Positions 4,987-30,318 of a stretch of 64,000 nucleotides of DNA are shown here, in pieces (positions within the stretch are counted from its first letter, which is position 1; each line of letters starts with the position of its first letter). The stretch covers positions 186,001-250,000 of IMG/VR virus record IMGVR_UViG_3300042545_001134; one strand, 5' to 3'. Both the position numbers and the translations under genes were made by a program. The notes below the pieces were generated by a model. That model did no database searches. It was not told the origin of the DNA and saw nothing but the letters and a program-made list of their open reading frames with translations.

Positions 4987-6678
4987 TTAACAACAGCAAC
5001 CCACAGGTATACTTGTTCCACAACTTCCGCTTATTATGTCGTCCTCGGGACCGACGGTTTCACTTATTATTTTCCAAGCACAATTAGGATTTGGTAAACT
5101 ACTCATATTTACAAATGTCCCTATTGATAACGAAACAAGGGACTTCGCTATGTACGTTGGGCCGCTCGCTGCGCCCGTATCACAGTTACTTACTGCCCTA
5201 ATAAAATAGTAAAATTCCATAGGTGTTGAAGTTGGAGTTATTGTTGGTGTTGAAGTTGGGGTTGTTGTTATAGTTCCCGTTGATGTTGGAGTTATTGTTG
5301 GGGTTGTCGTTGATGTAGGTGTTACCGTTGGGGTTGGTGTTGCTCCAATTGAACCACATATCTCAACAATTTTAAATGTTGTTGTTTTGGGGTCGGACAC
5401 ATAAATTGTGTTTGTTGGTGGATAAAATACCACATCAAATGGTGTTGAATCCGGTATTGTTATTGTATCTGATAGTGTACCCGTTGATACATCAATAACT
5501 TTAACAACTCCACCATCAAAAATTGGGATGTATAATTTATTGTTTACACTGTTATATACAGAGTTATAAATCGTCAACCCAAGTGAAATACTATATGAAT
5601 TTGTAACACTATTTGTTGAACAATCGATTACATCATAACCCCCTGTATGGATTACAAATAATTGATTAGTTGATGATTTATATGATAATGAACGAACCGT
5701 TCCACTGACCGCAATACTCCCAACTATTGTATATGATATCGTAGAAAATCTTTGAACAGTTGTACCCGTACCCGGAAGATAAAGAGTATCGTTAATTGAG
5801 TTATAACTTAATGTATAACTCGTACTATTAATTGGTAAACCAGTAACTTGTGTAATAAATGTTTCAGAAGAACCATCTATTACCGATATTTCACCTGAAC
5901 TCGTTCCAGTATATGAGGAAAGATACATTACATTATCTCCCGAATTAAATTCAAACGCCTTTGGATTTGTTGGTCCATTTCCTAAATATGTTTCGGTTTG
6001 TGGAATTGTTGTATTTTGCATACGTATAGTGCCACCTACGTCAACCCCATAAACTTTATTTGTTACGGTATTCATACCTATAATAGATGTGTTTACACTG
6101 GTCGTAAATGTCCCAAATATGGATTGTGTTGATGAGTTTGGTATAACTCTACTAATGTAATATGCCGCACCAACGTTAAGTGCATAAATTTCATTATTAT
6201 TTGGGTTATACACCATACCGGAAGGTCTGTTATACACTGATGGACTGTTCAATGTTCTTACAATATCGTCACTACAAGTAGTTGATGTCGGGGTAGTTGT
6301 TATAGTTCCCGTTGATGTTGATGTTGGGGTTGTCGTTATGGTTGGAGTTGGAGTTATCGTTGGTGTAGGTGTTGATTGGTTTTCACATGTCACATCGATA
6401 CTAAAACAGATTGTGTCATAACATGGGAACGCCTTACTATCGTGAGTAAAGATATTTTGAACAATATATCTACCCGTTGCATTGTCCGTCATTTTAATCC
6501 AATACTGAGTATCGAATGTTAAACCTGAAATTGTTATTTCAGTTGTTGACGGAGTATATGAACCCAATAACGTAAAAGTTGAATTAGTTTCAACGGGGTA
6601 TGGATTATTACCCGACTTATAACGAATCGTGTAATTACCATTTGAGATTATATTATATATTCTTACGTTTAGTCCCAT
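4987..6678 (-). CDS. FN3-like N-domain + PT linker + YVTN/YncE-like beta-propeller + PT linker + Cys-rich C-domain
   Basis: 563 aa. TISGLTFDTQYWIKM is FN3-like. Repeats of about 42 aa (YNPNNNEIY, FNSGDNVMY, YNSINDTLY, YNSVNNKLY, with VIDG/VIDC/VIDV) are typical of YVTN propeller blades. Confidence 0.65.
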   Translation of the reverse strand: MGLNVRIYNIISNGNYTIRYKSGNNPYPVETNSTFTLLGSYTPSTTEITISGLTFDTQYWIKMTDNATGRYIVQNIFTHDSKAFPCYDTICFSIDVTCENQSTPTPTITPTPTITTTPTSTSTGTITTTPTSTTCSDDIVRTLNSPSVYNRPSGMVYNPNNNEIYALNVGAAYYISRVIPNSSTQSIFGTFTTSVNTSIIGMNTVTNKVYGVDVGGTIRMQNTTIPQTETYLGNGPTNPKAFEFNSGDNVMYLSSYTGTSSGEISVIDGSSETFITQVTGLPINSTSYTLSYNSINDTLYLPGTGTTVQRFSTISYTIVGSIAVSGTVRSLSYKSSTNQLFVIHTGGYDVIDCSTNSVTNSYSISLGLTIYNSVYNSVNNKLYIPIFDGGVVKVIDVSTGTLSDTITIPDSTPFDVVFYPPTNTIYVSDPKTTTFKIVEICGSIGATPTPTVTPTSTTTPTITPTSTGTITTTPTSTPTITPTSTPMEFYYFIRAVSNCDTGAASGPTYIAKSLVSLSIGTFVNMSSLPNPNCAWKIISETVGPEDDIISGSCGTSIPVGCCC

Positions 6679-26809: not shown

Positions 26810-26895
26810 TTGTTTAGTTTTTCGCCCCCTGTATAACTAAACAAAATAGATGCTTGCGGTCGGCCGCGAACCATTAAGGGAGCCACCCACTTTTT
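26810..26895 (-). ncRNA. putative structured RNA with pseudoknot downstream of nrdA (family not recognised)
   Basis: GC-rich island. P1 AAAGUGGGUG/CAUCUAUUUU, P2 GCGG-CCGA-CCGC, P3 UUGUUUAGUU/AACUAAACAA; P3 loop AGGGGGC is complementary to GCUCCCU in J1/2. Confidence 0.5.
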
Positions 26896-29325
26896 TTAGG
26901 AACCACATCCCTCACATTCAAACGGTGAATCAGTTGGTCTTGAACTCATAACCATTTCCATTAATTTCATTTCTTCTGAATTATCTTGGATAAGGTTATT
27001 TGTACTTGGAACCTCTTGGGTTTCACTATTTGGTTTTGTTGTGGACATGTCGATACCTAACCCTTTAAGTGGGTCAACCGCGGATTTGGTTCTTAGATAG
27101 TACATACCGGTTTTAAGACCGAGTTTCCATCCGTAAAGGTGTGCCGCTAATACTTTCTGTTTACTTGCATTTGCGATGAATAAATTCAACGACTGAGATT
27201 GGTCGATGTAAATAGAACGATTCGCCGCCATAGATAAAATTCTCTTTTGAGACATTTCCCATACGGTTTTGTAAACTTCTTTTACCTCAGTTGGTATTTC
27301 AGGGATATTTTGAACCGAACCATTCTCCATGATAAGTTTCTTTTTAATTTCGTCTGACCAAATACCCTTTTCAAGTAATGTTTTAACAAGGTGTTTATTA
27401 ACTACCACGAATTCACCACCTAATGTTCTTCTTGAAAATAGATTAGATGTAAATGGTTCAAACGCTTCGTTATTTCCTAAAATTTGTGCTGTCGATGCTG
27501 TCGGCATAGGTGCTACTAACAATGAGTTTCTTACACCGTACTTAACAACTTCTTTTCTTAAAGACTTCCAATCCCATTTCTTACTTGTGTCTTTATCTGT
27601 TTTACCCCACATTTCATATTGGAAGATACCTTCAGATAAAGGTGACCCTTGGAATGTTTCATACGCTCCGTTTTCTTTTGCCAAATCTTTTGAAGAAGTC
27701 AATGCCGCAAAATAAATGGTTTCAAAAATCTCCGTTTGTAGAACATCTGCCGCGTCACTTTCGAAAGGTAGATTTAACATACAAAATACATCGGCTAAAC
27801 CTTGAACTCCTAAACCAACCGGTCTGTGTCTCATATTTGAACGTTTTGTTTCCTCAGTAGGATAGAAGTTCAAATCGATAACGTTGTTTAAGTTCTTTAC
27901 AACTTGGTATGTGTAATCATATAATAAATCATGATTGAATTCATTATCCAAGATGTATTTTGGTAATGCAATTGACGCTAAGTTACAAACCGCCTGTTCT
28001 TCGGGACTTGAGTATTCGATAATCTCCGTACATAAGTTTGAAGATTTAATCGTACCTAAGTTCTTTTGATTTGATTTGTAGTTTGCTGGGTCTTTATATA
28101 ACATGTAAGGCGTTCCTGTTTCAATTTGTGCAGTTAGAATTGCATCCATTAATTTTCTTGCCTTAACAGTTTTACGAGCCCTACCTTCTTGTTCGTATTG
28201 TTCATATAAACGAGTAAAAGATTTATCTTCAGGTGTATCGTATATATCAGATAAACCCGGCGCCTCATCAGGTGAGAACAAAGACCAATCCAAATCTTTC
28301 TCAACTCTCTCCATGAATAAATCAGGAGTCCACATTGCCAAGAATAAATCTCTTGCTCTCATTTCTTCTTTACCATGATTCTTTCTCAAATCAATAAATT
28401 CAAAAACGTCAGCATGCCATGGTTCAAGATAAACGGCAAAAGAACCTTTTCTTTTACCACCTTGATTAATCCAACGAGCAACTTCATTATATGTTTTCAT
28501 CATAGGAAGAAGACCATCAGATTCTCCACCTGTTCCTCTAATGTAAGAACCCTTTGCTCTCACATCATGAACGTGTAATCCGATACCTCCGGCCCATTTA
28601 GAAATTTTAGCAACATCTTTAATTGTGTCAAATAAACCATCAATATCATCACCTTTGTTACCGATTAAGAAACAAGATGACATTTGTGCTCTACGAGTAC
28701 CGGCATTAAATAATGTAGGAGTTGCGTGAGTGTAGAAATGTAATGAAAGGTCGTCATATATTCTTAACGCCATTTCTAAATCACCATTACAAATACCAAC
28801 GGCAACTCTCATGTACATATATTGTGGTCTTTCAACAATACGATTATTGATTTTCAATAGATAAGAACGTTCCAATGTTTTAAATCCAAAATAATCGAAA
28901 TCAAAATCTCTTTCTTGGGTAATAGCACCATCTAAAACTTCTTTGTTTTGTTGAACAAATTTAGCAACATTATCATCAATCAAAGAGGATTCCTTATTTG
29001 TTTTAGGTTCAATGAAATGATGCAACTCCTTAATACACTGAGAGAATTTTTTAGGTGTTGTTTTATGTAAATTAGAAACCGCAAGTCTTCCGGCCAATTT
29101 CGCATAATCGGGATGTGAGGTTACTAATGATGCGGCTGTCTCTGCCGCCAATGTATCCAACTCCACAGTTGAAATACCGTCATATATACCCTGTGTTACT
29201 TTTAATGTAACTAATGTTGGGTCAATAAATTCAATATTCAAATCATCACAAAAATGTTGTATTCTCCTTGTTATTTTGTCATATCTCATCTCCTCTAAGG
29301 AGCCATCTCTCTTTTTTACTTTCAT
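26896..29325 (-). CDS. nrdA: ribonucleoside-diphosphate reductase class Ia alpha subunit with ATP cone
   Basis: VKKRDG ATP cone, ATPTLFNAGT, QMSSCF, SSNLCTEI, APMPTAST, KTGMYYLR and C-terminal CEGCGS. Confidence 0.97.
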   Translation of the reverse strand: MKVKKRDGSLEEMRYDKITRRIQHFCDDLNIEFIDPTLVTLKVTQGIYDGISTVELDTLAAETAASLVTSHPDYAKLAGRLAVSNLHKTTPKKFSQCIKELHHFIEPKTNKESSLIDDNVAKFVQQNKEVLDGAITQERDFDFDYFGFKTLERSYLLKINNRIVERPQYMYMRVAVGICNGDLEMALRIYDDLSLHFYTHATPTLFNAGTRRAQMSSCFLIGNKGDDIDGLFDTIKDVAKISKWAGGIGLHVHDVRAKGSYIRGTGGESDGLLPMMKTYNEVARWINQGGKRKGSFAVYLEPWHADVFEFIDLRKNHGKEEMRARDLFLAMWTPDLFMERVEKDLDWSLFSPDEAPGLSDIYDTPEDKSFTRLYEQYEQEGRARKTVKARKLMDAILTAQIETGTPYMLYKDPANYKSNQKNLGTIKSSNLCTEIIEYSSPEEQAVCNLASIALPKYILDNEFNHDLLYDYTYQVVKNLNNVIDLNFYPTEETKRSNMRHRPVGLGVQGLADVFCMLNLPFESDAADVLQTEIFETIYFAALTSSKDLAKENGAYETFQGSPLSEGIFQYEMWGKTDKDTSKKWDWKSLRKEVVKYGVRNSLLVAPMPTASTAQILGNNEAFEPFTSNLFSRRTLGGEFVVVNKHLVKTLLEKGIWSDEIKKKLIMENGSVQNIPEIPTEVKEVYKTVWEMSQKRILSMAANRSIYIDQSQSLNLFIANASKQKVLAAHLYGWKLGLKTGMYYLRTKSAVDPLKGLGIDMSTTKPNSETQEVPSTNNLIQDNSEEMKLMEMVMSSRPTDSPFECEGCGS

Positions 29326-29340
29326 CGTTTATTTTATTTT

Positions 29341-30318
29341 TTAGAAATCTATCTCGTCAAAATTCGTATTTAGGTCCTCTATAGACGAATTATTATTTAC
29401 CCCTGCCTTTTGGTATTCTGCAACTCTTTTTTCAAAGAAATTGGTTTTACCTTGGATGGCAATGTTCTCCATAAAATCAAATGGGTTTGTAGAGTTATAA
29501 ACTTTATTAACTCCCAATGACATTAATAATCTATCGGCAACAAACTCAAGGTATTGTTTCATCAAATCAGAGTTCATACCAATTAATCTTACAGGTAATG
29601 CCTCTAAAATGAATTCTTTTTCAATTTCCAATGCCCCACAGATTATCTCTTTAATTTTTTTATCTGATAATTTCTTTTCAATGTGGTGATTATATAAATG
29701 ACACGCAAAGTCACAATGCATTCCTTCATCACGAGAAATAAGTTCATTTGAAAAGGTTAAACCTGGCATTAAACCACGTTTCTTTAACCAAAATATAGAA
29801 CAGAACGAACCACTAAAGAAGATACCTTCAACCGCAGCAAACGCAATTAATCTCTCAACAAAAGAATCAGAGTTAATCCACTTGATTGCCCATTCTGCCT
29901 TCCTCTTGATGGCAGGTACCGTATCAATTGCATTGAACAAATGATTTTGTTCGTTCTTATCTTTAATGTATGTATCAATTAATAATGAATATGTTTCACT
30001 ATGAATGTTTTCCATCATAATTTGGAAACCATAGAACATTTTTGCCTCGGTATATTGAACTTCATTTAAAAAGTTAATACCCAAGTTTTCATTTACGATA
30101 CCGTCAGACGCAGCAAAAAATGCCAAAACATTCTTAACAAAATGTTGTTCATCTGAATTTAGTTTATTGTCCCAATCATTAATGTCTTGGGCTAGGTCAA
30201 TTTCTTCTGCTGTCCAAAAACATGTTTCTTGTTGTTTATAAAGTTTCCAAATATCGTGATGTTCGATTGGAAAGATGACAAAACGGCCTGGATTCTCTTT
30301 AAGAATTTTTTCACTCAT
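29341..30318 (-). CDS. nrdB: ribonucleoside-diphosphate reductase class Ia beta subunit
   Basis: [40 protein letters not shown] and ISRDEGMH. Confidence 0.97.

Follow-up and report, generated by a model that had tools for sequence, protein, structure and literature searches.

What is the folded RNA that lies between the nrdA stop codon and its terminator in a large phage genome, and does it have anything to do with nrdA? The window analyzed here is a stretch of 64,000 nucleotides, bases 186001-250000 of the IMG/VR virus record IMGVR_UViG_3300042545_001134. The record is 310,691 bp long (GC 34.7%, CheckV 93% complete) and carries 25 tRNA genes and a tmRNA gene. On the minus strand of the window, nrdB (29341-30318) and nrdA (26896-29325) are followed by the RNA element (26810-26890) and then by an intrinsic terminator. 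The nrdA ORF is a class I ribonucleotide reductase large subunit (Pfam ATP-cone, Ribonuc_red_lgN and Ribonuc_red_lgC, the last with E 6e-204), and the ORF upstream matches Ribonuc_red_sm. An initial annotation made from the sequence alone had proposed a pseudoknotted RNA at this place, with a topology resembling the ZTP riboswitch, as a candidate novel ribozyme, ligand-sensing 3' element or sRNA located 3' of a nucleotide-metabolism gene. We find that the fold is real, but that it is one copy of a widespread, very conserved, tRNA-sized pseudoknotted RNA that matches no catalogued family, occurs in many phages and a few bacteria, and has no special tie to nrdA. We assign it no function.

Every helix that had been proposed is present in the sequence, and all coordinates given here are on the minus strand. 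The nrdA stop codon, TAA at 26898-26896, is followed by five A. The 5' strand of P1, GUGGGUG (26890-26884), pairs with CAUCUAU (26852-26846) over 7 bp, three of them G.U. The inner GGUG and the inner CAUC are nearly invariant in the family. The 5' strand of the pseudoknot, GCUCCCU (26883-26877), follows P1 directly with no spacer. A conserved junction, UAAUGG (26876-26871; family consensus YAA-N-R-G), leads into the internal hairpin (26870-26853), which contains GCGG-CCGA-CCGC within 26870-26854 and consists of a 6-bp stem with one bulged C and a CCGA tetraloop, followed by one purine before the P1 3' strand. P3 is a perfect 10-bp helix between UUGUUUAGUU (26844-26835) and AACUAAACAA (26819-26810). 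Its 15-nt loop, AUACAGGGGGCGAAA, contains AUAC (26834-26831) and then AGGGGGC (26830-26824), which is complementary to GCUCCCU (7 bp, one G.U), and ends with an invariant linker of GAA plus one nucleotide (26823-26820). The GC-rich island noted in the initial annotation is modest, with a GC content of 0.43-0.49 against about 0.3-0.35 around it.

The element is distinct from the terminator, as had been proposed. P3 is AU-rich and is followed by CAUAUAC, not by a U run, so it does not have the form of an intrinsic terminator. The terminator of the nrdB-nrdA unit lies at 26800-26775 plus a T run (26800-26769 in all; 11-bp stem, GAAA loop) and probably defines the 3' end of the RNA. The next gene (26751-26284, minus strand) encodes a gp25-like baseplate wedge protein (Pfam GPW_gp25, E 8e-12). 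Between the terminator and its start codon, at 26769-26741 and at the same place in all relatives (loci L001-L080, from the NrdA search described below), is a strongly conserved AT-rich block (UUUAUUAGUAUUUC ... UUUAUAUUUAU) that is probably a phage (late?) promoter and leader. In one contig (L034:5431-5640), otherwise identical to that of L030, the sequence jumps from the start of the terminator into the middle of the gp25-like gene, either as a deletion variant or as an assembly artefact.

On this one sequence alone the fold is not better than chance. The MFE z-score is -0.5 for the element and -2.1 when the terminator is included. The support is therefore comparative, and an absence of homologues, or of covariation in P1, P3 and the pseudoknot, had been set out in advance as grounds for discarding the proposal. 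To obtain relatives, we searched viral contigs with the NrdA protein, which gave 80 loci at 83-100% identity. The DNA after each stop codon showed about 28 distinct versions of the element and about 20 loci without it. When 29 nrdA-linked copies were aligned to a covariance model, 94.3% of cells in P1, the internal hairpin and the pseudoknot were paired, compared with 84.1% in column shuffles and 33-52% when partners were slid, and 8 pairs changed on both sides. In 57 diverse copies the corresponding values were 97.9% and 86.0% in shuffles, with 12 such pairs, including all six pairs of the internal hairpin stem. P1 covaries at the 2nd pair (AU/GC/GU) and at the 5th (UA/AU). The first pseudoknot pair switches from G-C to A-U, and the third from U.G to U-A, C-G, G-C or G.U. 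In a dedicated scan for any non-U at the third pseudoknot position, with the partner left free, 17 of 17 hits had a matching partner. P3 differs freely in sequence but stays complementary, for example UUGUUUAGUU/AACUAAACAA in this window, GUUUUGA/UCAAGAC, GGACUUGA/UCAAGUC and GUUUGGAA/UUCCAAAC. RNAalifold on a plain MAFFT alignment recovered only P1, because P3 is out of register between subtypes; R-scape was not run on the full alignment. Thus, the observation of a pseudoknotted RNA on the minus strand at this locus is confirmed.

To test whether the element is specific to nrdA, we searched with a pattern made of two core pieces (CUCCCU, a gap, AUACAGGGGGYGAA). At least 119 loci (96 distinct) were found in viral contigs, and with a stricter version of the pattern at least 120 loci (92 distinct cores) were found in metagenome contigs with GC contents of 25-64%; these searches were not exhaustive. 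All share a core of about 60 nt (GGUG-R-CUCCC-U ... hairpin ... CAUC ... AUACA-GGGGGY-GAA). ARAGORN and Rfam show that many copies lie inside same-strand tRNA arrays, where they start 1-7 nt after one tRNA and end a few nt before the next. Many others lie about 30 nt upstream of phage tmRNA genes, and others follow nrdA or occur in unrelated intergenic places. In species-representative prokaryote genomes the pattern gave 10 true copies. Seven are in Patescibacteria, where the RNA stands alone near tRNA genes among ordinary chromosomal genes, often 7 nt downstream of a TATAAT box, and one copy each is in a Planctomycetota, a Saprospiraceae and a 'Gammaproteobacteria' MAG. The distribution is sporadic, as only 2 of 151 sampled Patescibacteria genomes have it. 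A blastn search of 50,697 GenBank phage records with the region, and with a 71-nt core, returned no match. No neighbouring protein gene is shared, and a search for a partner protein among the neighbours in bacterial genomes found only unrelated housekeeping genes. Phylogenetic profiling of protein families in complete phage genomes with and without the RNA was not run. The Planctomycetota copy (locus L225:1300-1800, in a 1.5-Mb contig) lies in a region rich in mobile elements, between a DDE transposase gene and a fragment encoding only the C-terminal Transposase_20 domain of an IS110-type transposase; from this single case we draw nothing. A survey of distances between the element and flanking ORFs was too noisy to use.

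A conserved GUUCUUUGAAAA(U)AU lies directly 5' of the tmRNA, 15-30 nt upstream of phage tmRNA genes, in loci L097, L117, L178, L109 and many others. It resembles the boxA antitermination signal of rRNA leaders. The tmRNA leader of the genome under study (6400-6450 of the full record, G000) lacks it. The tmRNA promoter region of this genome does share the box ACUUACCUUUGUAU with contigs in which the element is inserted between that box and the tmRNA, but here the element is absent at that site. A resemblance of GCUCCCUUAA to boxA was discounted, because that stretch is base-paired with covariation. In one group of contigs (L120, L155, L160, L254, L256, L336, L353, L406 and L410) a recurrent second conserved hairpin-forming sequence (AGAGUUGGAGU-ACAGGUC-GAGCUCU...) follows just downstream of the RNA and may be another small RNA or a processing signal.

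The element behaves like a single-copy gene. The covariance model finds one copy in this genome (73 bits) and one in each of five other jumbo-phage records of 182-311 kb, and their positions differ. In two of these records (G157 and G160) nrdA, at 58% and 43% identity, has no element, and the copy lies in a tRNA array or in front of tmRNA, while in a third (G159) it follows nrdA. Each of five bacterial genomes examined also has one copy. None of the 25 tRNAs of the genome under study has a copy beside it. Its tRNA array does hold another orphan small RNA, freshwater-1 (Rfam RF02979, 73.4 bits, just above threshold), at 306810-306872 of the record (L316:3811-3873), between tRNA-Leu and tRNA-Arg, which shows that such phages place small RNA genes in RNA-processing contexts. 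In addition, a 132-nt spacer between tRNA-Met and tRNA-Gly (224-355 of the record; L315:224-355) folds into two long GC-rich hairpins (-51.9 kcal/mol, z = -3.6, 0 of 200 shuffles as good). It has no Rfam match and may be a further unannotated RNA.

The consensus of the 57 diverse copies defines the core. P1 has 5-7 bp, the inner four pairs being GGUG/CAUC with a conserved G.U; P1 length varies from 5 to 8 bp in the family. Directly after P1 comes R-CUCCC-U, the pseudoknot strand, followed by YAA, after which a hairpin is inserted in one subtype, and N-R-G. Then come the 6-bp hairpin with a CYGA or CGUA loop, one purine, the P1 3' strand, a variable segment and AUACA-GGGGGY-GAA. About 30 positions are nearly invariant, and a search anchored on the 5' half alone showed that the 3' half is nearly invariant too. 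Two architectures exist. In architecture I, as in this window, the strand after GAA pairs with the segment just after P1, making a hairpin (P3, 6-10 bp) whose loop is exactly AUACA-GGGGGY-GAA plus 0-3 matched flanking nucleotides. In architecture II that segment is a small optional hairpin or only 3-4 nt, and the strand after GAA pairs with the 5' leader (P0, 7-13 bp, covarying). The geometry of architecture II is rigid: in 40 of about 44 copies exactly one further paired nucleotide separates P0 from GGUG, so that P1 is 5 bp, and exactly one nucleotide separates GAA from P0. We infer, without having shown it, that P0 and P1 stack and that GAA-N runs back along the 5-bp P1, which would explain why the P1 sequence itself is conserved; 3D modelling constrained by the two connectivities was not run.

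Several lineages have lost or degraded the element. Alleles without it share the terminator of their closest relatives with it, and at least one still carries the 3' tail of the element and is thus a deletion. Truncated copies (L242, L245, L251, L289 and L296) keep only the 5' half, with the internal hairpin fused to a U run, so that the remnant looks like an intrinsic terminator. A large sub-lineage (type C) has a decayed core, in which the pseudoknot is weakened to GCUCC/GGAGC, AUACA has often become AUAAA, GAA has become AAA and the hairpin is degraded, although P1 and P3 are kept with compensatory changes. It includes a 288-kb, 92%-complete genome whose only copy is of this type (core changed, hairpin lost, 23 bits). 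The RNA is therefore dispensable.

A match to a catalogued family would have removed the novelty, and a comparison with Rfam had been named beforehand for that purpose. No Rfam 15 family (4227 models) reached its gathering threshold on the element, either in the window or in 11 loci that carry architecture I or II copies, where only tRNA and tmRNA were found. With the threshold relaxed to E up to 10 and the element searched alone, in both architectures, only noise was found, namely unrelated sRNA models at 8-23 bits against thresholds of 35-376. Membership in ZTP, HDV-like, pistol, twister or any other Rfam family is not supported, and the HDV and ZTP resemblance is one of helix order only. 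A full-text literature search for the core strings returned only unrelated human and animal sequences, and topic searches found no description of this RNA, although one that is unpublished or outside the literature searched cannot be excluded. With that caveat we rate it as a new RNA class.

The interpretation in the initial annotation is partly supported. The RNA is genuine, conserved and pseudoknotted, and the separate terminator, the lack of an Rfam match and the ZTP-like order of helices all hold. The tie to nrdA or to nucleotide metabolism is not supported, because the same RNA occurs in tRNA arrays, in tmRNA leaders, as a lone gene in Patescibacteria and in many other intergenic places, and because related phages carry their single copy elsewhere. 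A ligand-sensing 3' element is unlikely, and our data do not choose between a ribozyme and an sRNA.

We consider the element to be the single copy, in this genome, of an autonomous structured RNA of about 70-90 nt, a reading to which we give about even odds. The fold is what covariation demonstrates: P1 and the pseudoknot share one continuous strand, the internal hairpin branches at their junction, AUACA and GAA flank the second pseudoknot strand, and the 3' tail is tied down by P3 or by P0. How the RNA is made and how it works are our inferences. Here it would be transcribed as the tail of the nrdB-nrdA message and end at the terminator of that operon. The conserved core would itself be the functional unit, independent of the neighbouring gene, and would most likely act as a released, stable RNA, with release by the terminator here and by tRNA-processing enzymes in tRNA arrays. 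Its partner would be one common to very different hosts, or its chemistry would be self-contained; in this view it is not a regulator of nrdA. The variety of settings, the single copy at variable positions, the absence of a shared neighbouring gene, the well-supported structure, the rigid geometry of architecture II and the independence of the terminator favour this reading. However, no partner is identified and no transcript ends are known, and the losses and the rarity in Patescibacteria weigh against it. Only four metatranscriptome runs contain the region, as assembled contigs at depth 3-6; one ends within about 5 nt of the P1 start, one ends inside AUACA and one spans the whole element, so that they neither show nor exclude processing. 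A more far-reaching possibility, which we hold only tentatively, is a new class of natural functional RNA with its own chemistry or a universal target, such as a previously unknown self-cleaving or self-processing ribozyme, or an RNA that docks on a machine shared by all its hosts (ribosome, RNA polymerase, RNase P or tRNA enzymes), spread by phages and kept as a single-copy gene.

The main rival is a new class of small self-cleaving, or otherwise self-processing, ribozyme, which we regard as possible but less likely. In this reading the double-pseudoknot core would cut the transcript at its own 5' edge or in a conserved junction, severing the nrdA mRNA from its terminator here and separating tRNAs or tmRNA from flanking RNA elsewhere. 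One copy per genome at a variable position would fit it. So would the nested order of helices (P1a, pseudoknot, hairpin, P1b, optional hairpin, the C-containing junction AUACA, pseudoknot), the alternative connectivities around one core, which are typical of small ribozymes, the conserved G.U wobbles in P1 and in the pseudoknot, the loss of the C of AUACA in decayed copies, and the sporadic, phage-rich distribution with some copies directly after tRNAs, as for HDV-like theta ribozymes (PMC10879173). On the other hand, no Rfam ribozyme model matches even at E up to 10, HDV hallmarks are missing, and one copy per genome with none next to the 25 tRNAs of this genome argues against a tRNA-processing task. 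Self-cleavage was not assayed.

The remaining readings are less likely still. A cis-acting RNA, such as a put-like element that makes RNA polymerase read through the terminator into the baseplate genes, or a barrier or processing signal that sets the stability of the nrdBA 3' end, is unlikely. It would fit the position just upstream of an intrinsic terminator in this window and in about a quarter of other copies, the position just downstream of a conserved promoter-like box in tmRNA leaders together with the boxA-like GUUCUUUGAAAA, the start of P1 2-9 nt after the stop codon in all nrdA-linked copies, and the retention of P1 and P3 in decayed copies. However, many copies have no terminator after them or are sandwiched between tRNAs, the Patescibacteria copies look like lone genes, and the conservation of about 30 nucleotides in hosts from 25 to 64% GC is more than a barrier hairpin needs. 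A riboswitch-like sensor controlling termination or read-through after nrdA is more doubtful again. Its compact, conserved core with a closing helix in one architecture, like an aptamer, the ZTP-like helix order and the terminator here speak for it, but the terminator does not co-vary with the element and is identical in close relatives that lack it, no alternative pairing and no consistent downstream gene are conserved, no Rfam riboswitch matches, and most contexts are not 5' UTRs, positions between tRNAs and in front of tmRNA not being riboswitch contexts. Stop-codon readthrough or recoding was rejected: the frame after the stop is open through the element in this window, but relatives have an in-frame stop within 1-4 codons. 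A chance fold or a lineage-specific leftover without function, which the unremarkable folding energy and the losses might suggest, is contradicted by covariation in three helices and in both alternative closing helices, and by a near-identical core in hundreds of contigs of unrelated base composition.

New, widespread and strongly conserved small RNA folds are rare finds, and past ones of this size and distribution turned out to be ribozymes, riboswitches or guide RNAs. This family offers an unusually well-defined core, two natural connectivities that constrain its 3D model, hundreds of sequences for covariation analysis, and a self-contained size of about 80 nt that gives a clear experimental handle. 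It also adds to the evidence that jumbo phages, and some Patescibacteria, carry small RNA genes of unknown function alongside their tRNAs and tmRNA. It should not be annotated as an nrdA regulatory element.

Among known RNAs, the ZTP (pfl) riboswitch (RF01750) has a similar order of elements, in which P1 encloses a single-stranded pseudoknot strand and a hairpin, and a second hairpin and the other pseudoknot strand follow. Architecture II follows this order exactly (P1a, pseudoknot strand, hairpin, P1b, hairpin, pseudoknot strand), while in this window the second pseudoknot strand lies inside the P3 loop and not after it, so helix order by itself speaks neither for nor against membership. The conserved ZTP sequence blocks are absent, with GGUG-R-CUCCC ... 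AUACA-GGGGGY-GAA conserved instead, and RF01750 does not match. The element is not upstream of purine or folate genes, lying 3' of nrdA here and next to tRNA or tmRNA elsewhere, and no expression platform is coupled to it.

HDV-like self-cleaving ribozymes, including the phage theta ribozymes (PMC10879173), share the nested double pseudoknot, here with P1 and the pseudoknot interleaved and both supported by covariation. They also share an optional hairpin after P1b, a conserved C in the junction before the second pseudoknot strand, richness in phages and, for some copies, a position directly downstream of tRNAs. A strict HDV mapping fails on L3/P1.1 and on P1 geometry. There is no 3-bp P3 with an L3 loop and no P1.1; the internal hairpin is 6 bp with a 4-nt loop, preceded by a 6-7 nt conserved junction, and the nucleotides after P1b are not conserved. 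P1 is not of a fixed 7 bp with a free 5' end, its conserved end is the inner one, and in architecture II the 5' leader continues it as a helix with no unpaired nucleotide. GAA follows rather than precedes the second pseudoknot strand, and no Rfam HDV model matches. The catalytic C of these ribozymes is the first nucleotide of J4/2, whereas the nearly invariant C here is the 4th nucleotide of AUACA and is lost in decayed copies, which leaves its equivalence undecided. A 5' edge within about 5 nt of a tRNA 3' end, as described for theta ribozymes (PMC10879173), holds for a minority of family members but not for this window.

In the pistol ribozyme, as here, a G-rich hairpin loop pairs with a C-rich strand that lies between a helix strand and an enclosed hairpin, but the two domains come in the opposite order, the conserved nucleotides differ and there is no Rfam match. 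Finally, orphan structured RNAs co-encoded with tRNAs in phages (freshwater-1, GOLLD and ROOL) share the genomic habit of lying sporadically next to or inside tRNA clusters, and have no known function; the proximity of GOLLD and ROOL to tRNAs has been noted (PMC5737381). In sequence and fold they are unrelated to this RNA, which is much smaller than GOLLD or ROOL and, unlike freshwater-1, is pseudoknotted.
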